Positions 3,318-63,750 of a stretch of 64,000 nt of DNA are shown here, one piece after another. Numbering within the stretch: position 1 is the first letter of the stretch; every line of letters begins with the position of its first letter. The DNA lies in the NCBI RefSeq assembly GCF_006345805.1, contig NC_043020.1, forward strand, positions 19,778,001 to 19,842,000. The letters are read 5' to 3'. Source of the stretch: Octopus sinensis (taxonomy: Eukaryota). The notes under the pieces were generated by a model. It was not told where the DNA came from and searched no databases. It saw only the letters and a program-made list of their open reading frames with translations. Made by a program: the position numbers and the translations under genes.

Positions 3318-5445
3318 CTGCTGAATTACTGCTGAGATGCTCAAAATATCTGGCAGTGTCGGCTATAGCCTAGTCACCCGTATAGTTAACCAGGTGATAC
3401 ACGAAGGAGTCATACCCAATGACTGGTGTAGTAGCATAATAGTCAACTGCTACAAAGGTAAAGGTGATGCCCTAGATACAAGTAATTACAGAGGTATCAA
3501 GCTGTTGGATCAGGTAATGAAGGTTACGGAAAGGGTCATAGCCCAACTGATTAGAGAGAGAGTCAACCTAGACGAGATGCAGTTTGGTTTCATGCCAGGG
3601 AAAAGCACCACTGATGCCATATTTCTGGTGAGACAGCTGCAGGAGAAATACCTAGCCAAAGATAAAACTCTGTACCTGGCTTTCGTTGACTTGGAGAAAG
3701 CCTTTGACAGGGTCCCCCCGTTCCCTTATCTAGTGGTCAATGAGGAAACTAGGGATAGATGAATGGCTAGTGAGAGCTGTGCGTGCCCTGTACAGGGACG
3801 CTGTCAGTAAGGTGAGGGTTGGCAACAAGTACAGTGAAGAATTCCGGGTGGAGGTTGGGGTCCACCAAGGCTCAGTCCTCAGCCCCCTCCTATTTATCAT
3901 AGTCCTCCAGGCAATAACGGAGGAATTCAAGACAGGATGCCCCTGGGAGCTCCTCTATGCTGATGACCTTGCTCTAATTGCTGAGTCTCTATCAGAACTG
4001 GAGGAGAAGTTTCAGATGTGGAAGCAAGGATTAGAATCAAAGGGCCTTAGAGTCAATCTAGCTAAAACCAAAGTCCTAATAAGTAGGAAGGTAGACAAAT
4101 CTCAAACGCCTTCAGGTAAATGGCCCTGCTTGATCTGTAGAAAAGGCGTAGGTAGGAACTCTATAAGATGCACCAAGTGTAAGCTATGGACACATAAGAG
4201 GTGCAGCAATGTCAAAGGAAGGCTAACTAGGAATATAGTTTTTGTATGTGGCAGATGCTCTGGTGCAATAAACACTGAAAATGCGCAGAGACCATCTTCC
4301 GCCACATTCTAGGGAGAAAAACTTGAAATAGTTGATAGTTTCCATTACCTAGGTGACCAAGTCAGTAGAAGGGGTGGGTGTGCCGAAAGTGTAACTGCTA
4401 GAGTAAGAATAGCCTGGGCAAAGTTCAGAGAGCTCTTACCTCTCGCTCAGAGTAAAAGGCAGACTGTATGATGCATGTGTGCGAACAGCCATGCTACATG
4501 GCAGTGAAACATGGGCCGTGACTGCTGATGATATGCGTAAGCTCGCAAGAAATGAAGCCAGTATGCTCCGTTGGATGTGTAATGTCAGTGTTCATACCCA
4601 ACAGAGTGTAAGTGCCTTGAGAGAAAAGTTGGACCTAAGAAGCATCAGATGTGGTGTGCAAGAGAGGCGTCTATGCTGGTATGGACACATAGTAAGAATG
4701 GCTGAAGATAGTTGTGTGAAAAAGTGCCACACCCTAGCGGTTGAGGGAACCTGTGGAAGAGGTAGACCCAGGAAAACCTGGGACGAGGTGGTGAAGAACA
4801 ACCTTCACTCTTTAGGTCTCACCAAGGAAATGACCAGAGACCGAGACCTTTGGAAGTATGCTGTGCGCGAGAAGACCCGGCAGGATAAGTGAGGCCATAA
4901 CCCATGGCCCCTACCTGGGATGTAGTCAGTCCACCTGTGCATACCTTCCTTCTTGGGACACATAACTCTACTTGTGAAGACCTGTTGAGGCAAGTGAAAA
5001 TCAAAAATCAAAGAATCAAATCAAAATCGATGAACATCAATGGAATTTGTAGTTTTGTGGTACCATTGCCGGTGGCACATAAGAAAACCATCCGAACGTG
5101 GCCGTAGCCAGTACCGGATCGACTGGCCTCCTTGCTGGTGGCACGTAACAAACACCATCCGATCATGGCTGTGCCAGCCTCGCCTGGCCTCCGTGCCGGT
5201 GGCACATAAATAACACCATCCGAGTGTGGCCGTTCGCCAGCCTCGTCTGGCACCTGTGTTGGTGGCACATAAAAAGCACCCACTACACTCACAGAGTGGT
5301 TGGCGTTAGGAAGGGCATCCAGCTGTAGAAACACTGCCAGATCTGATTGGCCTGGTGCAGCCTTTAGGCTTCCCAGACCCCAGTTGAACCGTCCAACTCA
5401 TGCTAGCATGGAAAGCGGACGTTAAACGATGATGATGATGATGAT
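3318..5445 (+). mobile_element. 5'-truncated RTE-clade (RTE-X-like) LINE: RT pseudogene plus 3' UTR and (GAT)n tail
   Basis: ORF pieces 3337-3762 (NYRGIKLL, QFGFMPGKSTTDA, AFVDLEKAFD), 3740-4312 (GVHQGSVLSP, LLYADD, PHD-like Cys cluster) and 4479-4892 (MLHGSETW, GRGRPRKTW). Frameshift near 3720, premature TAG near 4310, deletion near 4440. Confidence 0.95.
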
Positions 5446-17337: not shown

Positions 17338-18105
17338 TATATATATATATATATATGTGAAATAGAAAGATGAATAATCTTGTAGCAGATTAATCAAAAG
17401 TTTAACCGATACCTTGGTAGCAAAAATCACAGCAGAAAACAGCACGGTTGGAGGTACAACCATATGGTGTTGCAACCGTGCGTTGGTGCGGATAATTGAA
17501 ATTAAAATATTATTGGTGAATTGAAGAAATGGAGCTGAACGAAGATTGAACAGAAATCGTTTTATTTCATTCTACACGTGTTTCGAAAGGCACAATTTAC
17601 CAAAATCCGATTGAATATATATATATATATAAATGAAAAGCTTGCTTCCCAACCACATGGTCCCAGTATTACTGCATGACACCTTGGGCAAGTGTCTCTT
17701 ACTGTAGCCTCAGGCTGACCAAAGCCTTGTGGATTTGGTAGACAGAAACTGAAAGAAGCCTGCCATATATATATATCATCATCATATATATATCATATAT
17801 ATATATATATATGCCATATATATATATCATCAGCTGTGTAAAGAAGGGCCAATCTCTAACTGTGAAGGGAACCTGTGGTAAAGGTAGGCTCAGAAAGACA
17901 TGGGACAAGGTGATGAAGCATGATCTTCAAACTTTGAGCCTCACAGGGGCAATAACCGAGACACAATAACAAGACACAATAACAAGACACAATATGGTCT
18001 CATTATTCAATCGGATTTTGGTAAATTGTGCCTTTCGAAACACGTGTAGAATGAAATAAAACGATTTCTGTTCAATCTTCGTTCAGCTCCATTTCTTCAA
18101 TTCAC

Positions 18106-18139
<34 letters not shown>

Positions 18140-18148
<9 letters not shown>

Positions 18149-18640
18149 ATGGATCAGAATGGAAATCGATCAATGGAAATTGCAGATGTGTTACCAGTGC
18201 CGGTGGCATGTCGAAACTCTACTTGTGAAGACCCGTTGAGGCAAGTGAGGATCAGAATGGAAATCGATCAATGGAAATTGCAGATGTGTTACCAGTGCCG
18301 GTGGCATGTAAGAGAACCTTCCGTTTCGCGACCGTTGCCAGCACCGCCCCGTTCGTGTCCGTTGCCAGCCTCGCCTGGCCCTTGTGCCGGTGGCACATAA
18401 AAAGCACCATCCGTTCGTGGCCGTTTGCCAGCTCTGTCTGGCACCTGTGCGGGTGGCACGTAAAAAGCACCCACTACACTCACGGAGTGGTTGGCGTTAG
18501 GAAGGGCATCCAGCCGTAGAAACACTGCCAGATTTGACTGGGCCTGATGAAGCCTTCTGGCTTCACAGACCCCAGTAGAAGCGTCCAACCCATGCTAGCA
18601 TGGAAAACGGATGCTAAACGACGATGATGATGATGATGAT
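18140..18640 (+). mobile_element. RTE 3'-UTR fragment with minisatellite units and (GAT)n tail
   Basis: Homologous to 4960-5445 (gtgccggtggcac.taaaaagcacc units). Confidence 0.8.
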
Positions 18641-19071
18641 ATATATATGCAAATTCTCTCACCCTTATTAATTAATATATAATATATATATATATATATA
18701 TATGCATATATATATATATATATATACATATGCATTTTTTCTTAGTACTGACCTCGTCTGCTAGCTGACCACTAGTCTCGCCCTACCTCACACGCCTACA
18801 CACAGACGCACACACTAACACACACATATTTTTTTGTTTTTTCATCTCGCCTCACACACACACATACACACATGCACATGCACACACTCACACATACACA
18901 CACATCTGTTGGGTTACCAACCTTGTCTCCACTCTTTTGCCTTTAAAAACCCACTTTGCTCTTGTTATCGTCAACATCCGCCTTTCACCATGTGCAACTC
19001 GTAAACACCAGTCGTCTTTTTTCTCTTTCCCTGTTGCCCGCTCTGGGATCTTTCTCTCTCTCTTCCTTCTT

Positions 19072-19109
19072 TATGTTTCCGACGAAGAGCTCCGCTCGAA
19101 ACGTCATAC
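19072..19109 (+). ncRNA. Minimal type-I hammerhead ribozyme-like motif in the 5' pLTR (core variant CCGACGA)
   Basis: CCGACGA-A-GAGC-TCC-GCTC-GAAA-CGTC: 4-bp stem II, palindromic ACGT stem III, predicted GUC cleavage after 19105. U4 is C. Confidence 0.65.
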
Positions 19110-22100
19110 CTCCCTGCTTCCATCTCCTGAGCGCCTATTAATAATAATACTGTAATTGTTCCTGTTGTTGTTGTTTTGTGTTTCCCTTTTGGATTAAAAT
19201 TATACCACTGCGCGCCTACACGGACCCCTGTACCTTGGATACCAACTCTCGGATTTTTTGCACCTACGGGATTGTTACCATTCTTCCTGACCTACGGATC
19301 ACCTGCAACCTTCTTCCGGAGTACCGCTTACCGTGATGTAAAATCATTACTTAATCTGTCCGTTGACTCTCAAATCTCTTTCCTGACTTTTTTCAACTTT
19401 TTTCTATTGTTTTCAAACTGTCTTCACCCTTTTTCTTCTTTCGTTGTTTTCCTGTTGTCTCTCCTTTTTCCTGCTTCGCCACCACCCACTTTACCGTTTG
19501 CCACCACCTCTCATCATGCCTGACTTGCACTCGTTCGTCCAACACCTTCAATCCCTCTCAGCCGCTACCTCGCGTTCTTCCCCCCACAATGTTCCGCACC
19601 TGCTATAAAACTTTCCCGCTTGCTTTTTAAGAAAACCTGCCACTCTAGTCATCTTTCCTTTCTTAGCCGGTGCCTCCGCCATCATGTCACACCCCGCGGT
19701 TTCCTCTTGAAGTTCCACGCTACCCCCTATTCCTCCCCCTTCATCGAACCCACCCTCGCTCGGACCTCCGCTCCCTCCTCCGCGCCACCATCCGCTCCAC
19801 CCGCCCCCTCCTTGACTCCTCGACCATCAACTTCCCCAGGCCTACCTCCTTCTCTCCGCCCTCTGCCCTCCACTCTTCACCCAACCTATCCTCCGCTTCA
19901 TTCTTAATCTCAACCACCAACTCTACAACCACCTCACACACACAAAAAACAAAAAAACTCCACCTCCTCCTCAACCCCTCACCCCTTCCCATCCTCCCCC
20001 ACTGTTCCCCCCCTCCTTCGCACCTACCCCACCCTTCACGGACCCCCCCCCCCACCGTGACCTTCCTACGCCTAACCCATCTTCACCCAACCACCCCCTA
20101 CCCTCCCCTTCACACCCCTGCACCCCCTCCGCCTGCCCCTAGTCCTCCACCACCCCGCTTCCTCGCGCTGTTGTCACTATACCCCCACCTCCCCCTCTCC
20201 GCCGCTGAGCGCTCCCTCCTCAGTAAAGGTCTCCGCTTCACGCCACTCACGCGCCACTGTGATGAGTTCGAGACTCGGGCGGACGTCAACCTGTTCCGCG
20301 CCGCCTCAAACTTCGCGCATACTACCACGCGTCCCCGCAGCGTCAAAACAATCAGGATTGCCTTTTGGAGCTGGGGCGTCGTCCATCCATCTGGACGCCG
20401 CCCCCAGGCCTTTTCAGTAGCCTAGATTCGTTTGTACATGACTGCAACGCTTTGGTCCACCGTTTCAACTTTGAACCAAGACCCCGCCAGCCAACCTCAC
20501 TCGGGCCGAATCCATTGCCCTTCGCCACCTCCGCCGTCGTGATGACATTGTCATCAAACCGGCGGACAAAGGCGGGGCAGTGGTAGTGTGGCGCGCGGAC
20601 CTATACAGGGAGGAAGCGCTCAACCAGCTTCAAAATCCACTCTTCTATCGCCTCCTCCCCTCCGATCCCACCTCCTCCTACCAACAACGAGTGTCCTCCA
20701 CCATCCACGACCTCATCTCCTCCTCCGCTCTCCCCCTCACCGCCACCAACCTCATCGTCCGCACACCCCGCACCTCCACCATCTACTTCCTTCCCAAGAT
20801 CCATAAACCCTCTAATCCTGGCCGTCCCATAGTCTCTGCCTGTAATTGCCCCACTGAACTCATCTCCCTATACCTCGACCGCATCCTGTCCCCCTTAGTC
20901 GCAGCCCTCCCATCCCACATACACGACACCAACCACGCCCTCCGTCTCTTCAATTCCTTTTCCTTCCCTTCCAGCCCCTCACACCTCCTCTTCACTTTAG
21001 ATGTAAAATCCTGTACACAGTGATTCCCCACAATGACGGTCTCCTAGCCCTCAAACACTTCCTCGACCGTCGTCCCGACCCCACCCCCAGCACCCCCACC
21101 CTTCTCCGTTTGGCCGAGCTCGTCCTCACCCTCAAATGCTTCACGTTCGCCGGGGAAACGTACCAACAGGTGTCCGGGGTCGCGATGGGAACTAGGATGG
21201 GCCCCAATTTCGCCAGTCTCTTTCTTGGCTACATTGAGGCCCAAGTGTTCTCCCAGTTCTCTGGGCCGACCCCCGAAACTATACGGTCGCTATATCGACG
21301 ACTGCGTAGGTGCCACCTCCCTTTCCGTGAACTTCTCTGCCAATTCATCTCTTTCCTTTCCAAATTTCATCCCTCCCTTCAATTCACCTCCACCATCTCC
21401 AACACCTCTGTCAACTTCCTTGACATCTCTCTCCGCATCGATCACCCCTCCAGATCTCTCACCACCACCGCCTTTTTTAAACCTACGGATTCCCACCTCT
21501 ATCTCAACTTCTCTTCCTCCCACCCTTCCACACCAAACGAGCCATCCCCTACTCCCAGTTCCTCCGCCTCCGACGTTTGTGCAGCCGCGACCAGGATTTC
21601 GAGACCCAATCTCAATACCTGGCCCGCATGTTCAGACTCCGAGGTTACCCACCCATACTCCTCTCTGATGCCCTCACCCGCGCCCGTCGCATCGACCGCA
21701 CTACCGCCCTGTCTCCTTCCCCCCCCCCCCCCCCCCCAACCGCACCCCCCTTCCCCCTCCTTTTCCACCCCTCTACCCTACCCCTTCGTCGCAAGATACT
21801 ACGTGCCTTCCGTCGCCTCCAGCTTGATCCCACCACCCGCCCCATTTTCCCTAACCTACCCTGTCCTCTTTCAAACGAGCCCGCAATCTGCGTGACCTCC
21901 TGGTCCACAGCACCTCTCTCCTTCCCCCTCAGCCCCACACGGATCATTCCCTTGCTCTAGATCCCGCTGCAACACTTGCCCCTTCATCACCAACACCACC
22001 GCTGTCACCGGCTCCAACCTGCACACTGTACGCATTAGGCACTCTTTTACGTGCACCTCGTCTGGCCTTATTTACTGCATTAAATGCAACCTATGCGGGA

Positions 22101-22379
22101 TGCTGTATGTAGGACAGACGGGACGCCGGTTGTCCGACCGTTTCACTGAGCACTTAAGGGACGTTCGCCTACACTCTCTTTCTCCCGTCGCACGCCACTT
22201 CCGTTCGGCCGGCCTTCCCTAGATGACATCTCAGTGTTTGGTCTCGCCCCCCACCAAGGTCGCCCACTTTCCAGGCTCCACTTGGAGCAACGCTACATCT
22301 TCACCCTACAAACTACCACCCCACACGGACTTAACACAGCCCCCTCCTCTTGAGATCTGTTTTTTTTTTTTTTTTTTTT

Positions 22380-24600
22380 GGCACACCACCCACACACACA
22401 CCCACCTGCCTCCCACACGCACACACCCACCCACCTACCTCCCACACCCACACCCAACCACCTACCTCCCACACGCCTGTTCACACACACACATACGCAG
22501 ACCCATTTACGTACATACATTCACACATTTAATCACACACACTTACAGACATACTAGCACACACTAACATACAAACCAACATGCACATACACACACACAT
22601 ACATACATACGCACACACATACATACTTACACACACACACACACACACAGACATACATACACACATACACACACACATACATACGCACATACATACACAC
22701 ACACTCACACACACACACACCGCACGTACATACTTCACACACACACATGCAAACATACATGTAGGCACATACATACATACATGCCCACAAATGCACACCC
22801 TTACACTGAATGCACACACACATACACCTTTTGCATCCAGGCAGCCCCCCCTCTTTTCTGCTTTCCGGTTTTGGCTGATGGATCCTCGGTTCCCGCGTAG
22901 CGGGGCGTTCGAGGGCCTTTGCGCTCGCGCGCCTTGGCACGCGCTGGGGGCTTGGTCGGCCCCTTGGGCTTGCGTTGTACTGCTTGTGCGTTGTGTGCGT
23001 GAGCGCGCTTTGTGCGTGTGGGCTTGCTTCGGATGTGCGCGTACGTATGTATGCATACATACCCACACACTCGCATGCATCCCTACCCACATACATACAC
23101 GCACACCTACTCACACACACACATACACACACATACCTGCACACACAACACACATACATACATACACATACATACCTACTTCAGACATACACACACACAG
23201 ACATACACCATAAACTCACACCTCACACGCATACACACCACACACATACACACGCACACGTACACATACACACACACACACACACCTACATACATACATT
23301 ACACTTGTATACACACACACTTACATTCATACCACAACACACCTACACAGCCATACCCTCACTCAGACACACACATCTACCTACACACACACACAAACAC
23401 ACACGGACACACACCATACATACAACATCTACACACACACGCCTACACACATACATACACACATACATAAACACAACACACCATACAACACATACGCACA
23501 CACACATATACTTATACACATGCACACCCACACACACATACATACATACACCCATATACATACATACAAACATACCACATACTCCTATACGCACATACAT
23601 ACACAAAGACATACACACTACACACTCACACAAACATATACACACACACATACTTACACACACACTCACCTGCACGCGCACACACATGCATGACAAACAC
23701 CCATACACTCACACTCACATACGCACACACCAACATAAACACGCACCGCACACACACACCTACACTCCCACACACATACACACGCACCTACATACACACA
23801 CGCACGCATACACACGCACACACACATACATTACACACGTACACACACACCCACATACACATGCATACACACACACACACAAACATGCACGGACACACCC
23901 AGACATACACACATACACCTATATACACACGCCCCCACAACTACATACACACACATATACACCGCCCACACACCTACATACACACATACATACACACACA
24001 TACACGGACACACCCACACATACTTACATACATACACCTATACACACACGCCTACACACCTACATACACACACATGCATACACACACACACACTGTACGC
24101 ACATACACACACATATACGCACATACATATACCCACACACATGCACACACACACACACATACGCACATGCATGCATGCATGACACACGCGCACACCTACA
24201 CGCATACACACACACACACGCACGTACACATACATACATACACACACGCATACATACACCCATACACATACATGCATCCGACACACACATACATACACAC
24301 TCACACATACATACACACACACACACTCACTCACACACCTGTATGTACGCGCACACACATGCACATACACACACTTCCCCACACCCACACGTACATACAT
24401 ACACACTCACACACATAACACACACACACACGGACATACATCTATGCACACACACATACATACACAACATACTCACATACATTCATCGCACACACTGCCA
24501 CCCAGACATACACACAGACACACTCACACATCCATACACATACATACTTACGCGCATACTCGCAGGCACGCGCACATACGCACTTGCGCCGGCTCGCGCA
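22380..24600. repeat. About 2.2-kb degenerate (CA)n/(CATA)n satellite inside the Penelope-like element
   Basis: Directly visible; source of the His/Thr-rich and Cys/Val-rich spurious ORFs. Confidence 0.95.
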
Positions 24601-25311
24601 TGAGAACGCGTCGCATACACCTCGCCCTTGGACCTGACGAGACCTCCGCCCGTTCCTGGGACCGTCGCGTGTCGTTGGGTTTTCCCACGCCTGTCTCCGC
24701 GCGGTACCACTCTTCCATCTTCCCTCAGCTGGAGTCCTTTTTCCTTAACCCCCCCCCTTTTTTCGTTACACACACGCGCACACAATACACACCTTGCCTA
24801 TATATATACATCACTCTTACAACATTCAATCTACTCGCCATTAATACCACCACGACACTGGACACACACACACACTACTACTCAACACACGCTGGCACGC
24901 TACATACGCCCCCACCCCTTCCCTCCCTCCCTTCCCCTTCCTTCTTTTTCTTACTACTGACCTCCCTTCCTCCTTCCTTCTTTTCTTAGTACTGACCTCG
25001 TCTGCTAGCTGACCACTAGTCTCGCCCTACCTCACACGCCTACACACAGACGCACACACTAACACACACATATTTTTTTGTTTTTCATCTCGCCTCACAC
25101 ACACACATACACACACGCACATGCACACACTCACACATACACACACATCTGTTGGTTACCAACCTTGTCTCCACTTTTGCCTTTAAAAACCACTTTGCTC
25201 TTGTTATCGTCAACATCCGCCTTTCACCATGTGCAACTCGTAAACACCAGTCGTCTTTTTTCTCTTTCCCTGTTGCCGCTCTGGGATCTTTCTTTCCTCT
25301 CTTTCCTTCTT

Positions 25312-25349: not shown

Positions 25350-25439
25350 CTCCCTGCTTCCATCTCCTGAGCGCCTATTAATAATAATACTGTAATTGTT
25401 CATGTTGTTGTTGTTTTTTTGTTCCTTTTGGATTAAATA

Positions 25440-25690
25440 TTATATATATGATATATATATATATATATTGCATATATAATATATATATAATATATATATA
25501 ATATATATATATGCATATATATATATGTATATATTATATATATATATATATATAATATATATAATATATTATATATAATGCATATATATATATGTTATAT
25601 ATATGTATATATATTATATGTTGTTGGATATATATAGATATATATATTAATATATTATATATATGTGTATGTAGTATGTATGTATGTATG
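25440..25690. repeat. (AT)n-rich microsatellite
   Basis: Directly visible. Confidence 0.95.
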
Positions 25691-49100: not shown

Positions 49101-50864
49101 TAAGGTATCTCCCTCTTAACAGAAGAGCTATATGTTTATAACCTTTCTTTGGACCCATGTTCTGGATAACTAAATGCCTTCGTCTCTCATACCTAGAAGG
49201 TCAGATGAGAAAGAGATTAAGAGAAAGAAATGCATAATTCTGTCAAATCGATACAATGGTACAGTGTAATGCTAAATGGAATTCACAACAGAATCTCATT
49301 GACAGAAACTTGATTGCATGGACCTTTTTTTCTTTTTTTCAAAATACATGACTGCTATTTCTTTTTCTGTTGTTTGTGCCAATGACACTATTACAGGAAC
49401 ATGAACATACCAACGCTGCACCTATAATTATCAATGTTTTTTAATTTTTATTTTTAATACTCAGTTCACTAGGATGTTGAAAATCTATAGAAACCAAAAA
49501 ATGCTTTAAAATTAACTTAGACTGAAATTTCAATGAATATTTGAAATTTAAATTCCTGTATGGTTGGTAGGTGGAAACTGGAAGATGCTCATCATATATA
49601 GAAGGGTAACTATAAAGTTTGGATACATGGGAAACATCAATCATATTCTTGCTTTTGTTTCTTTCACAAATTGAATATGAGTTTGTCTAAAGAAATAATT
49701 GAATCAATACTACTCATTGGGTATGAAGGATAGTCATAAGAACGTAGATGCTTTCAATGTATGTCGGATCTAGTTTTCCTCATTCACAAAATAAACCCCC
49801 TTGTCCACACACATACACATACATATACAACAGGCTTCTCTCAGTTTCTATCTACCAAATCCACTGACAAAGCTTTGGTAAGTCAAAGGCTATAGTAGAA
49901 GACACTTGCCCAAGGTGACATACAATGGGACTGAACCCAGAACCATATTGTTGGGAAGCGAGTTTCTTACCACACAGTCACAGGCAAAGTATGTATTATA
50001 TTGAAGTATGTATAATACTGAAGTGTGTATAATATTGGCTTCAAATTTTGGCACAAGACCAGCAATTTTCATCCCCACAGTTTAGCAGTTCGGCAAAAGA
50101 GACCAATAGAATAAGTACCAGGCTTTAAAAAATAGTACTGGGGTCAAGTTATTCAACTAAAACCCTTCAGGGCATCACCCCAGCATGGCCACAGTCCAAT
50201 GACTGAAACAAGTAAATGATAAAAGATATATTAAGATGTGTGAATATGGTGTGTGTGCACGCACGTGTGTGTGTGTGTGTGTGCACGCACGTGTGTGTGT
50301 GTGTGTATATATATATCATCATCACCATCATTTAATGTCTGTTTTTCATGCTGGCATGGGTAGGACAGTTTGACATGAACTGACCAGGCCTAAGACTACA
50401 CCAGACTATATATATAATTCTGCTGGGCCAGACATGTCACAAGATTCACAGACAACACATGAGTCTGTGCAGTTACTGAGTGGTATCCAAGAGTGGTATT
50501 CACCCCAGTGCTCAACTGGTACTATTTTGTTGACCTCAAAAGGATGAAAGGCAAAGTTGACCTTGGTGAAATTTGAACTCAGAACGTAAAGACAGATGAA
50601 ATTCCATTGATCATTTTACCCAGTGTACTAACGATTCCGTCAGCTCACTGCCTTTGAAGTGTGTATAATATTGAAGTATGTATATTAGTGAATAATGTAT
50701 AATACTGAAATGCGCATACTATTGAAGTATTGTATTAAGTTAAATCCTTGGCACATTAAATGCTATTAGCCTAATTGTGGATTTCACTAATCTGCCCACA
50801 CTCAACCCTATTTCTCTTCTTTACTCAACATTAATCTAGAGAAATCTCATTACGTGGACTTAAC

Positions 50865-51245: not shown

Positions 51246-52253
51246 ATGGATAACAAAGAACAGAGCAGATTGTGTGATGAAGAAAAAATTAAAGGTAATG
51301 ATGAATACAAGGCAAAGAATTTTGACGAAGCTCTGAAACATTATGAGATTGCTTTGGAGTATGATCCTAATAATATAACAGTAATTAATAACAAGGCAGC
51401 AGTGTTTCTTGATCAAGGAAAATACCAGGAATGTGTAGAACTTTGCAAAAATGCTTTGAAGTTGGACCCCAAAAATAAGGTTGATAGAAAAACTTTAGCA
51501 AAAACATATTACCGTTTGGCTAAAGCATATGAAAAACTGAACGATTTAGAGAATTCCCTGAAGTTTTATGACTATTCTATTATAGAAGACAGAAATCCTG
51601 CAGTGATAAAAATTGCTCAGAAGATGGAACTGGACCTCGAAGAACAACACAAAAATGCTTACATCAATTTTGATATTTCTGAAGAAGAAAATCAAAAAGG
51701 AAACCAGTGTTTCAAAGAGAAAGATTACAACAACGCTCTCAATCATTATACTGAGGCAATTAAGAGAAGTCCTAACGATGTCAGACGACATTACAACCGA
51801 GCTCTCTGCTACCTGAAGATGCAAGAGTATACACTATCATTGCAAGATGCAGAATCCTGTTCTAGGATTGATCCTACTTACATTCAAGCCTATCTTATCA
51901 AGGGCAAGCTATTTCAGAAGATGAGGGCCTTTTCAAAAGCCCATCTAGAATATGAAAAGGCCTTAGATATTGACAGTAACTGTGAGGAAGCTTTAAAAGG
52001 ATACAAGATCAGTTCTGAAGAAGCTGGACTGGACACAACTGCTCCAGAGGTTGTCCAAAGGCGTATACAGAGAAACCCTGAATTGAGAGCCATTCTAAGG
52101 GAACCAGAAATAAGCAAAATACTTTATGACATGCAAAATAATCCAAACTCTATGGCAATGTATATGAAAGATCCAGAAATACGCAAAAAGATTGACAAAC
52201 TGATTGCATGTGGTTTACTCACGATTGATCCAGTAATGGGAGAGGAATGTTAA
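51246..52253 (+). CDS. STIP1: Intronless STI1/HOP (STIP1)-like co-chaperone, TPR2A-TPR2B-DP2 only (335 aa)
   Basis: Colinear with the C-terminal part of human STIP1 (EKxxGNDxYK, AYINxD, YTEAIKRxP, ALDIDSNCEEA, DP-repeat tail ending KKIDKLIACGLL). Intact ORF with an in-frame TGA 6 nt upstream of the ATG. Probably a paralog or retrogene rather than the main ortholog. Confidence 0.93.
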   Translation: MDNKEQSRLCDEEKIKGNDEYKAKNFDEALKHYEIALEYDPNNITVINNKAAVFLDQGKYQECVELCKNALKLDPKNKVDRKTLAKTYYRLAKAYEKLNDLENSLKFYDYSIIEDRNPAVIKIAQKMELDLEEQHKNAYINFDISEEENQKGNQCFKEKDYNNALNHYTEAIKRSPNDVRRHYNRALCYLKMQEYTLSLQDAESCSRIDPTYIQAYLIKGKLFQKMRAFSKAHLEYEKALDIDSNCEEALKGYKISSEEAGLDTTAPEVVQRRIQRNPELRAILREPEISKILYDMQNNPNSMAMYMKDPEIRKKIDKLIACGLLTIDPVMGEEC

Positions 52254-55200: not shown

Positions 55201-57972
55201 CAAAATTTAAGGTGCAATATATAGATTTATCTAATCCAGTGGTAATCACAAAAGAGCTTCTTTAGTGGACCAGGTTATAAACCACAAAGTAAACCAATAC
55301 ATAAGAGTGTAATGTAGATCATAATCTTATGGATATCAACTAGTGAAATAAATATAATCATCTCATACCTCCTGACTTTCTAGAATTTTCCTCTCTTCTA
55401 GGATGTGACTGTATGGTAACAAGCTTGATTCCCAACCACATGGTTCCTAGTTCAATCCCACTTCATGAAACTTTGGGTAATTGTCTTGAGCTAAAGCCTT
55501 GTGAGTGGATTTGGTAGACAGACACTGAAAGAAGCCTGTCGTATATACATACATATGTGTGAGTGTGTTTGTCCCCACCACTGCTGGTGTGTTTCCTGTA
55601 ATTTAGCAGTTTGGTAAAAGTGACGAATAGAATGAGTACCAAGCTTAAAGAAGAGAATAAGTTCTGGGGTCAATTCATTCGACCAAACATTCTTTAAGGT
55701 GGTGCCCCAGCTTGGCAGCAGTCTAATGACTAAAACAAGTAAAAAGATGAAAGATAAAACACACAGTGTCTTGGACAAGTCAACTGTTGAAAGTGTTATT
55801 CATTTTATGTTGTTGAAAGGAATTATTGAAAATAAGCATTTTCACCTGTCTCCAGTTCACCCTGGATATATGTATACAACAGTGTGCCTTTGAGTTTGTG
55901 TCCCACCACTGCTTGACAACCAAAGTTGGTTTGTTTACCTCCCTGTAATCTAGTAGTTTGGCAAAAAGGAACCACTTGAATAAGTATCAGGCTTAAAAAT
56001 AAGTACCTGGGGTTGATTTGTTTAGCTAAATCTTTCAAAGCAGTGCCCCAGCATGGCCATAGACCAATAACTGAAATAATGAATTTCAATTTAAACCCCT
56101 CCTTCCACCACTAACCTCTTTGATTTTCTTTTCTGGAAATATTTCATTTTAATGAGTTTTAGTCTATTCTGGTTAGTTAGTAGTTGACAGATATATAACA
56201 CTGAAGTCTGTATAATGCTGGTTTCAAATTTAGGCACAAGGCCAACAGTTTCAGGGAAGGGACTGAAACAAGCAAAAGATTTATCACTTGTATTGACTAA
56301 ACTTTCAGAAGTTCTTATACACTATTGGTCACAATGTGCTTCCCATTCTTTCTTGATTGCACCATTCTCAGCCATCTTGGCCCAAATTATTTTACTAAAT
56401 TGTCTTCCAATCACTGTAGAGATCACTTCTTAGTTGCCTTTTCCAATCTCTTGGCTACCACTCTCTATCTGCACAGTCCAACCTGTTGTTTGTGAATCTT
56501 GCGACATGTCTCGCTCAGCAGAACTATATAATATAAGGCACTGCCTTGACGAATTTTTATTTTAATGAATCAACCTCAGCACTTACTTTTTTAAACCTGG
56601 TACTTATGCTATCAGTCCCTTTTGCCAAACTCCTAAGCTATGGGGACAAAATCAAACCAACATTGGTCATGAAGGACAAACACAAACTCAGTATATACAT
56701 ACACACACAAAAAACCAGCTTCTTTCAGTTTTTGCCTACCAAATATACTCACAAGGTTTTGGTCACTTTGGTCTGTAGTAGAAGGTGCTATGCAGAGGGA
56801 CTGAACCCAAGACTGCATGACTAGGATGAAAACTTCTTACTACAGTCACACCTGTGCCTGTTTGAGTCTTTTTTTACAGCTATAATTAGGTAGGAGAGGG
56901 TAACAATTGTATCCCTGTTATTCTGGTTCTCTGAGACTGGTAGGAGGATGTTATCCCCAAATTGGAGACATGGGCTGAATGCTTGCATTAGACTCTGCTT
57001 GAAGCACCCAAGGACCAGGTGAAGGAGTAAGTTTACCAACCAAGAAACTCAGAACACAAAAAGCTGGACAAAATACCACTAGGCATCTCATCTCACATTC
57101 AAACAATCCTTCCAATCCACTGCTCAAGACTGCTACTTTATTTTATCAACCCTGAAGGGATGAACATCAAAGTTGACCTTAGTAGAATTTGAACTCAGAG
57201 TATAAAGAATCAGAACAAAATATCACAAGGTATTTTCTCCTATACTCTGACAATATTGGCAATTATTCTTTCATTCATTCAATGTCCGTTTTCTTGTGTT
57301 TGTATGTGTTGATTGGGGACAATTTCATGTCGGATTTTAAAGCATGATGCTCTTCCTGTCACAGGATTGAATTCTGCACTGTTTCCATCAACCAAATTTC
57401 ATTCACAAGACATTTCTCAGCAAGAGGCTATTGTAGAATGCACTTGCTGAACATCATGCAACTGAACTCAAATATCATGTAATTGAACTCAAAGCAAGCT
57501 TCTTAATCACACAGCCATGCTTGCACCTATACATATACAAAAATATGCACAAACATATAGGTAAATAAACATATCTGAAAAAATGTTTTAGAAATAAAAG
57601 ACAACAAACAAGACTACATGGAAAATAATTTTTACACAGAAAAGAAGAGAGGAAAATTCAATGATTCAGACACCTGTCCTTCATCAGGAACAAAGATGAA
57701 ATAAAATATTGAAAGAGAAAAGAGATGTTACTTAAACTTAATTTAGCACAACAATAAACAGATATACATATAAATACCCACAAACAAATGTATGCATGCA
57801 TACACACACAAACTTTACATACATACAAAAACAAATGCTGTATTTGCTAATGAATAAGATGCACTCATATTTTACAAGTATATTTTGTGGAAAAAGATAA
57901 ATTTTGTGCTAACAGACTATGATATATATTTGCTTGCTTTTGATATCTTATTAGAAGTAACAGTTATTGTAC

Positions 57973-61558: not shown

Positions 61559-61729
61559 CTACGAGTGAGGAAGGGAGGAAAGAAGAGTCTCATTGTATCG
61601 GAGTTTGCGGTTTACATTCCACGATGGCTGTTCTATATGGACATATTCCCTCTCGACACTGATGGTTTCGTCAAAAGATACCTGGTCTAAGTAGTATGCC
61701 ATGAGGTCTGTTATTGCTTTCTCTTCAAT
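61559..61729 (-). CDS. Candidate coding exon (IEEKAITDLMAYYLDQVSFDETISVEREYVHIEQPSWNVNRKLRYNETLLSSLPHS)
   Basis: Strong acceptor ttgtctattttgcag and a 56-codon open frame. The 3' end is ambiguous (TAG stop, GTAGCT donor or GTGAGA donor). Confidence 0.6.
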   Translation of the reverse strand: MEEKAITDLMAYYLDQVSFDETISVEREYVHIEQPSWNVNRKLRYNETLLSSLPHS

Positions 61730-62146
61730 CTGCAAAATAGACAAATCCAACATATATTAATTTTCTGCATATACACACTCACATTTTAGAAGAATAGATA
61801 CAGTCTATTATTAGAACCAACCACCATTTCTTGCTGGCCACCTTGGTAGGATTCAAAATAAGAATAGAAAGAAACACAACTAAATACCCCAAAGTATTTT
61901 GTCCAATGACCAACTGATTTTGCCAATCCCCACCCATATATAAGTGGGTACAGGACGTCACAAAATGTAAACAACATGAAATATGAAGACAAAGTTGGGT
62001 ACGCAAACAATGAGAGAACCAAATGGCAAACAAGACAAGTGACATAAAGAAGGACCCTTCATCAGTTGTCAGCTGTCCATCTACTCCTCATTTCGAGCAT
62101 TTAATGACAATATGAGGCTTTGAAAGGCAGTTGCTCCCACGAACCA

Positions 62147-63304: not shown

Positions 63305-63750
63305 AAAGGATGTTGTACTTTAGGTGCAGGCATGTTGTGGTTAAGGAGATCGATTTGCATTCATGTGGTATCAGGTTCAGTACCACTGCATGGCACCTTG
63401 GGCAAGTGTCTTCTACTATGGCACCAGGTAGACCAATACTTTTGAAAGTGAATTTGAAGAATGGAAACTGTGCTAAAGCCTTATGTATGTATGTATGTTT
63501 GTATATGTGTGTGTATATATATATATACACACATGCACATATGTATGTGTGCTTGTGTGTCTGTCTTTGTGTTTGTGTTGACAACCAGTGTTGGTTTATG
63601 TCTCAGTAACTTCGTAGTTCAGCAAAATGACTGATAGAATAAATATCAGACTTAAAAAAATTAAGTGCTGGAGTAGAATTGTTCAACTAAACCCTGCAAG
63701 GTGGTGCCCCAGCATGGCTGCAGTCCAATGACTGAAACAAGTAAAAAAAA
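63305..63750 (+). mobile_element. Composite SINE (family of 239-630)
   Basis: tRNA-like head, 'ggcaccttgggcaagtgtcttctactat', microsatellite, tail 'gactgaaacaagtaaaa'. Confidence 0.8.

Follow-up and report, generated by a model that had tools for sequence, protein, structure and literature searches.

The co-chaperone HOP (STIP1 in human, Sti1 in yeast) is defined by its bridging of Hsp70 and Hsp90, and the necessity of this bridge is under current debate, fuelled by HOP-independent binary Hsp70-Hsp90 complexes and by the minimal TPR2A-TPR2B-DP2 module. Published work has established that this module is the minimal functional unit of HOP, that TPR2A-TPR2B suffices for inhibition of the Hsp90 ATPase and that TPR2B is the high-affinity Hsp70 site within it. 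In the cryo-electron microscopy structure of the glucocorticoid receptor (GR)-loading complex, TPR2A is found on the MEEVD tail of Hsp90 and TPR2B on the EEVD tail of Hsp70, and residue Y296 of Hop enters a cavity in the nucleotide-binding domain of Hsp70 (NBD-IIA) (bioRxiv 10.1101/2020.11.05.370247). Moreover, the exchange R469A in yeast Sti1, at the column of human R433, reduces the affinity for Hsp70. Here we describe a short HOP gene in Octopus sinensis that appears to depart from this scheme on the Hsp70 side. It was found in a stretch of 64,000 nucleotides (assembly GCF_006345805.1, contig NC_043020.1, positions 19,778,001 to 19,842,000 of the forward strand), referred to as the window, in which all coordinates given below are counted.

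The open reading frame (ORF) at 51246..52253 (+) is the sole long non-repetitive ORF in the window and constitutes a complete, single-exon coding sequence (CDS) of 335 amino acids (aa) plus stop. The encoded protein is a HOP/STIP1 paralog that consists of the TPR2A-TPR2B-DP2 module alone. Judged from the residues at the known contact sites, both structurally defined contacts with Hsp70, the TPR2B clamp and Y296, appear to be gone, and the site for the Hsp90 tail, the geometry of the module and the client palm appear to be kept. We consider it somewhat better than even (a probability of about 0.55) that the protein docks on Hsp90 without binding Hsp70 and acts as an Hsp90-only regulator.

Layout of the gene and state of the contact sites

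The assignment to the HOP family is clear. Pfam matches comprise TPR_1/TPR_2 repeats and a C-terminal STI1-HOP_DP domain (PF17830, E 4e-18), and the top phmmer match among all PDB sequences was human STIP1 (7kw7_E, E 6e-93), residues 222-542 of which pair without gaps with residues 7-327 of the query, so that the numbering differs by 215. The N-terminus of the protein coincides with the TPR2A boundary, and the N-terminal TPR1-DP1 module, which holds the first Hsp70 site, is missing. A tblastn search of the whole window with two bivalve HOPs for TPR1 or DP1 exons matched only the ORF itself, and in Octopus an in-frame TGA is located two codons 5' of the ATG. The identical protein has been called on GCA_006345805.1 (CM016882.1), and the databases already hold the gene as 'stress-induced-phosphoprotein 1(-like)'.

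The ungapped alignment with human STIP1 showed that all five clamp residues of TPR2A are retained: K229, N233, N264, K301 and R305 correspond to K14, N18, N49, K86 and R90. Of the TPR2B clamp only the two asparagines are left (N368 as N153, N399 as N184) and none of the three basic residues, as K364 has become N149, K429 has become Q214 and R433 has become I218. The original prediction, which had been made by eye from the sequence, had claimed precisely this asymmetry together with the absence of TPR1. The formal alignment bears it out: the strings EKIKGN, VINN, AKTYYR, EENQKGN and YIQAYLIK are all present, and the TPR2B codons concerned lie within 51670-51900. Its premise that TPR2B is the Hsp70-EEVD site of the module is likewise backed by the published work cited above. 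The features referred to in the remainder of the text are the following.

51246..52253 (+): CDS of the short HOP/STIP1 paralog (ORF, Pfam, match to human STIP1 with E 6e-93, same length in four other octopod taxa)
51264..51650 (+): TPR2A, aa 7-135, with the intact clamp
51465..51494 (+): loop and helix start within TPR2A, aa 74-83, where the canonical G-R-E...F/Y (human 289-291 and Y296) is now D-P-K...R81
51651..52031 (+): TPR2B, aa 136-262, fold and interdomain network kept (Y139, E170, K173, R174), groove remodelled
51690..51692 (+): codon of N149 (human K364 column), from the clamp alignment
51885..51899 (+): codons Q214 to I218 (human K429 and R433 columns, at 51885-51887 and 51897-51899), where R433 equals yeast Sti1 R469
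52032..52226 (+): DP2, aa 263-327 (PF17830, E 4e-18), with L293 (human L508) and Q297 (human Q512) kept
52227..52250 (+): octopod-specific 8-residue C-terminal extension DPVMGEEC, in which D-P-x-M is conserved

The loss of the basic clamp residues stands out against the conservation of these columns elsewhere. When 133 full-length animal, fungal, plant and protist HOPs were aligned with MAFFT, the three columns held K/R in 128/133, K/R in 133/133 and R/K in 132/133 sequences, respectively. We extended the comparison to some 320 HOP-family proteins, including the 150 top-scoring entries obtained when 1.84 billion cluster representatives were searched exhaustively with HMMER. Among these, only the octopod proteins lack all three basic residues; a single basic residue is left in two full-length HOPs (P0268 of Seison nebaliae and the metagenomic P0262), and an asparagine at the first lysine alone occurs in about twenty. 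The loss is not a chance product of a generally decayed sequence. The paralog departs from the canonical HOPs at 24 of the 90 columns with at least 90% conservation, for which the chance of losing three specified conserved residues and yet keeping five others is roughly estimated at 0.004; moreover, the pattern is fixed in five taxa.

The same survey yielded some other variants. P0268 and P0262 carry N/D-or-E at two of the basic TPR2B positions, which represents a partial erosion of the clamp, and P0179 displays the opposite pattern (K301T/R305I in TPR2A with an intact TPR2B). About nine further proteins that had appeared 'clamp-less' in hmmalign were discarded, since pairwise re-alignment showed that they had been mis-registered onto TPR1.

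A second contact with Hsp70, independent of the clamp, also appears to be lost. The column of human Y296 holds F/Y in 132 of the 133 canonical HOPs and an arginine in every octopod paralog (R81 in O. sinensis). In addition, the adjacent and near-invariant G289-R290-E291 is replaced by D-P-K (Octopus) or K-H-Q (Argonauta). The interdomain network that sets the angle between TPR2A and TPR2B (Y354, E385, K388, R389) is retained, and so are the palm residues L508 and Q512 of DP2. All octopods share Y354, E385, R389, L508 and Q512, and K388 is replaced, by asparagine, only in the octopod of data set SRR11869391.

In a TPR motif, positions 2, 5, 6, 9, 12 and 13 of the A-helix form the concave face. 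The groove positions compared here were defined by these positions, a choice that agrees with the TPR2A-MEEVD contacts reported in PMC2865030. For TPR2B, five of the ten highly conserved groove positions are changed in every octopod (K364N, S398Y/H, A402L/V, K429Q and R433I/V), and T405L is a further change, so that the remodelled groove of O. sinensis is made up of N149, Y183, L187, L190, Q214 and I218. A402 is the positional counterpart of A267 in TPR2A, which forms the Val(-1) pocket. Through these changes the groove loses three positive charges and becomes bulkier and more hydrophobic. For TPR2A only two of the twelve groove positions differ, both conservatively (F270L/I and E271D). The MEEVD contacts Y236, T260 and A267 are kept there (as Y21, T45 and A52) along with the entire clamp, and L55, D56 and K93 are conservative changes at MEEVD contacts.

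The predicted fold is that of HOP. AlphaFold2 (AF2) modelled the protein with an overall confidence (predicted local distance difference test, pLDDT) of 91, and all seven helices of TPR2B reached 95-98. The model superimposes on TPR2A-TPR2B of yeast Sti1 (3UQ3) at 1.9 A with a TM-score of 0.90, and Foldseek matched it to 7kw7_E with E 5e-22. The confidence is low over the C-terminal extension (...LTI|DPVMGEEC), which follows the point where canonical HOPs terminate (...IAIR); its D-P-x-M is found in every octopod ortholog and in none of the 133 canonical HOPs.

Orthologs, selection and origin

Orthologs of 335 aa were found in O. vulgaris (2 differences), O. bimaculoides (10 differences), the octopod of SRR11869391 (28 differences) and Argonauta hians (95 differences, 72% identity). 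Every octopod copy is single-exon, of equal length and free of indels. The Logan contig L004 is colinear with the genomic flanks and represents a further ortholog, with no sign of transcription from the contig. In Argonauta hians the gene occurs twice (contigs L002 and L006), in nearly the same sequence and with the same neighbours; uncollapsed haplotigs are a more probable explanation than a duplication. The substitutions are shared throughout: the basic columns of TPR2B read N, Q and I-or-V, and the clamp of TPR2A reads K-or-R, N, N, K and R, in all octopod orthologs. The paralog is known so far from octopods only. No squid or cuttlefish ortholog was found in the exhaustive search of representatives, in which the score falls from 538 to 300 bits past the octopod cluster.

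The gene is functional and under purifying selection. Comparison with the octopod of SRR11869391, for which dS (0.17-0.26) is not saturated, gave a ratio of nonsynonymous to synonymous substitution rates (dN/dS) of 0.15-0.27. The ratio is 0.15-0.19 for O. bimaculoides, and for Argonauta, with saturated dS, it is about 0.1. The CDSs of O. sinensis and O. bimaculoides share 97% identity, compared with 88-91% in the flanks, and between Octopus and Argonauta the CDS alone can be aligned, with the DNA similarity starting exactly at the ATG. TPR2B (dN/dS 0.12-0.15) is as constrained as TPR2A (0.11-0.15), and between O. sinensis and O. bimaculoides it shows not a single amino-acid change (dN=0). The term 'degenerate', which the original prediction had applied to TPR2B, therefore fits the clamp and not the domain, which in view of this constraint and the well-predicted fold is a maintained, re-shaped domain that has lost its clamp.

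The downstream neighbour on the minus strand (61614-61735 in the window, 19872-21008 in contig L001, 15388-21008 in contig L002) is the gene of a large Ank/RCC1/BTB protein, whose synteny with the short HOP gene extends to O. bimaculoides and Argonauta.

The gene most likely goes back to a multi-exon lophotrochozoan HOP, of which a 5'-truncated retrocopy was made prior to the split between Octopus and Argonauta. Retroposition is suggested by the fact that the copy lacks introns and is truncated at the TPR2A boundary. The STIP1 gene of Haliotis rufescens extends over 22 kb and has at least 9 coding blocks (tblastn), and its TPR2A-DP2 region is distributed over at least 6 exons across ~9 kb, whereas the octopod gene has one exon. 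A lophotrochozoan parent fits because the nearest canonical sequences are molluscan and brachiopod HOPs (43-45% identity). A full-length cephalopod HOP was absent from the best 120 of 3469 matches to a bivalve HOP (word-indexed search), and was recovered neither with a profile of the octopod paralogs (word-indexed) nor by an exhaustive search of representatives (a library collapsed at 50% identity); these searches did not query the octopus assemblies directly, and are thus uninformative and no evidence of absence.

Repetitive and retroelement-like sequence occurs at various places in the window. The ORF at 3740-4312 (+) matches RVT_1 (E 1e-15) and a PHD-finger and looks like a retrotransposon fragment; machinery of this type is the kind that makes retrocopies. 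A strongly C-rich block (~18000-25000, GC up to 59%, GC skew about -0.5) includes two long ORFs without Pfam matches (19670-20425 and 21020-21895) whose sequence looks retroelement-like. A 1.4-kb degenerate CA-rich repeat array with units such as CACATACACACACACA is found at 23088-24544, and a 230-bp (AT)n array at 25437-25664. Finally, a dispersed family of 150-400 bp repeats (66-86% identity; ~49800-50230, 55400-56810 and 63370-63750) flanks the gene in both orientations in O. sinensis and O. bimaculoides; it has many copies in contig L001 and is probably similar to short interspersed elements (SINE-like).

Functional readings of the short HOP

In the reading we favour, the MEEVD tail of Hsp90 would enter TPR2A, and TPR2B and DP2 would pack on the middle and C-terminal domains of Hsp90. 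The protein could then hold or inhibit Hsp90 as HOP does, without the recruitment or scaffolding of Hsp70, and it would compete with other TPR co-chaperones for the Hsp90 tail. The absence of Hsp70 recruitment is proposed because the TPR2B clamp and the Y296 contact both seem to be lost, and simultaneous binding of Hsp70 and Hsp90 is predicted to fail. That the protein binds Hsp90 and no longer Hsp70, and its role in the cell, are predictions from sequence and modelled structure. The possible role as a competitor of HOP, put forward in the original prediction, would require that octopus also has a canonical HOP.

Several observations weigh against the proposal of an Hsp90-docking, Hsp70-blind protein. 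The short HOP of Caenorhabditis elegans binds Hsp70 and Hsp90 competitively, and TPR2A of the octopod protein could therefore still take Hsp70 tails. Its peptide pocket carries F270L/I, E271D and N308K, so that the specificity could have shifted. TPR2B keeps N368, N399, K406, K395 (as R), F371 and K372, by which a weak binding of EEVD is possible. Within TPR2B, changes tend to accumulate in the groove (5/10 versus 8/38), a trend that is not significant (p=0.11); the argument for groove remodelling rests on the nature and fixation of the changes and not on their counts. Moreover, a new ligand would explain the strong constraint on the altered groove residues no less well than a plain loss. As to the origin, the sequence downstream of the stop shows neither a visible poly(A) remnant nor a target-site duplication, although such traces are not expected given that the copy predates the split between Octopus and Argonauta. 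In addition, both the retrogene origin and the role of competitor rest on a proxy parent, Haliotis, which belongs to another class of molluscs.

The main rival explanation is that the protein is a neofunctionalised adaptor, in which TPR2B has been re-specified to a neutral, hydrophobic groove for a non-EEVD ligand and links Hsp90 to a new partner or client. We regard this as possible but rather unlikely, and it is compatible with the Hsp90-docking reading and not exclusive of it. The altered groove residues (N, Y/H, L/V, L, Q, I/V) are themselves conserved across the octopods, the constraint on TPR2B equals that on TPR2A, its fold is predicted with high confidence, and a new conserved D-P-x-M extension has appeared at the C-terminus. 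However, a candidate ligand is lacking, positions 183 and 187 vary between Y and H and between L and V, respectively, and the constraint could be explained completely by a role of TPR2B as rigid spacer and contact of the Hsp90 middle domain. A combined version, in which a separation-of-function HOP, Hsp70-blind and Hsp90-docking, has been kept since before the split between Octopus and Argonauta and recruits a new partner through the re-shaped TPR2B groove, is more speculative and in our view improbable. In the extreme case, if true, the short form would be the only HOP of the lineage, and client hand-over by Hsp70 to Hsp90 in octopus would proceed without a bridging co-chaperone.

The protein could also be a minimal HOP that binds both chaperones, like that of C. 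elegans, with TPR2A taking the tail of Hsp70 or Hsp90 alternately or with Hsp70 contacted through non-clamp surfaces. The C. elegans protein is indeed functional without TPR1, the EEVD core is common to both tails, and the three TPR2A changes listed above could loosen the reading of the methionine. Nevertheless, we judge this quite improbable, considering that no other short HOP, that of C. elegans included, has lost the basic TPR2B clamp, that the readers of Met-4 (Y236 and the acidic 271 position) are retained in the octopod protein, and that the contact of Y296 with the Hsp70 NBD is gone as well. It is hardly credible that the locus is a retro-pseudogene without function, or that it is a wrongly annotated part of a longer gene with TPR1-DP1 exons elsewhere. 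True, the gene lacks introns and is 5'-truncated relative to HOP, and in Argonauta the 150 nt 5' of the ATG are free of in-frame stops. Yet an ORF of 335 codons has stayed intact, without indels, in five taxa across saturated synonymous divergence at a dN/dS of about 0.1-0.27, the CDS is better conserved than its flanks, and the 51 kb upstream hold no TPR1/DP1 coding sequence. The in-frame stop in Octopus and the onset of the Octopus-Argonauta similarity at the ATG likewise speak against a longer gene. The pseudogene was rejected on the basis of dN/dS and ORF conservation.

Significance and comparison with known systems

Should the Hsp90-docking, Hsp70-blind reading be true, the octopod gene would constitute a separation-of-function experiment carried out by evolution, in which the Hsp90 side and DP2 were kept and both contacts with Hsp70 were lost. 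It could then reveal the Hsp90-side activities of HOP alone, that is, the holding of the open state, the inhibition of the ATPase and the client contact of DP2. It would also be an example of a retrogene that changes its partner specificity by a few substitutions in a groove. The automatic annotation that transfers the Hsp70-Hsp90 organising function to this gene is probably wrong. A search of the literature on octopus or cephalopod STIP1 and on STIP1 retrogenes gave nothing relevant, and no natural, selected HOP paralog that combines the losses of TPR1, the TPR2B clamp and Y296 was found there.

Compared with canonical HOP/STIP1/Sti1 (7KW7 chain E; 3UQ3), the octopod protein is colinear over TPR2A-TPR2B-DP2, about 42-45% identical to animal HOPs and the same in the TPR2A clamp, the interdomain network and the palm residues of DP2. 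It differs by the absence of TPR1-DP1 and of all three basic TPR2B clamp residues, by a bulkier and more hydrophobic groove, by the exchange of Y296 for arginine, by the altered GRE loop and by the C-terminal extension of eight residues. Moreover, its gene is single-exon and evolves at a faster rate.

The domain composition as such is not exceptional. C. elegans STI-1 and the proteins of Dermatophagoides and Perkinsus, as well as P0150, P0152, P0161 and P0180, also lack TPR1-DP1 and consist of TPR2A-TPR2B-DP2 in about 320-340 aa. However, in these other short HOPs the TPR2B clamp is still basic and the Y296 column still aromatic, whereas neither holds for the octopod protein. Furthermore, the short C. 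elegans protein is the HOP ortholog of that organism, in contrast to the lineage-specific, retrogene-like copy of the octopods.

The laboratory mutants of Sti1/Hop provide a closer functional parallel. R469A affects the same column as I218/V218 of the octopods, and it lowers the affinity for Hsp70 while the binding of Hsp90 via TPR2A remains intact. N435A removes an asparagine that the octopod protein keeps. Unlike either mutant, the octopod protein has arisen naturally and been kept by selection, and it combines five or six groove changes with the loss of Y296 and TPR1. The behaviour predicted for it is in fact that of Tah1, which has one functional clamp that prefers the MEEVD of Hsp90 over Hsp70. 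Tah1 is, however, a small single TPR domain of the R2TP pathway that is not derived from HOP and has neither DP2 nor a second TPR domain. The idea that the octopod protein may be an undescribed type of co-chaperone is not supported, as Hsp90-only TPR co-chaperones such as Tah1 form a known class; the new element, if our reading holds, is an Hsp90-only co-chaperone that is derived from HOP.

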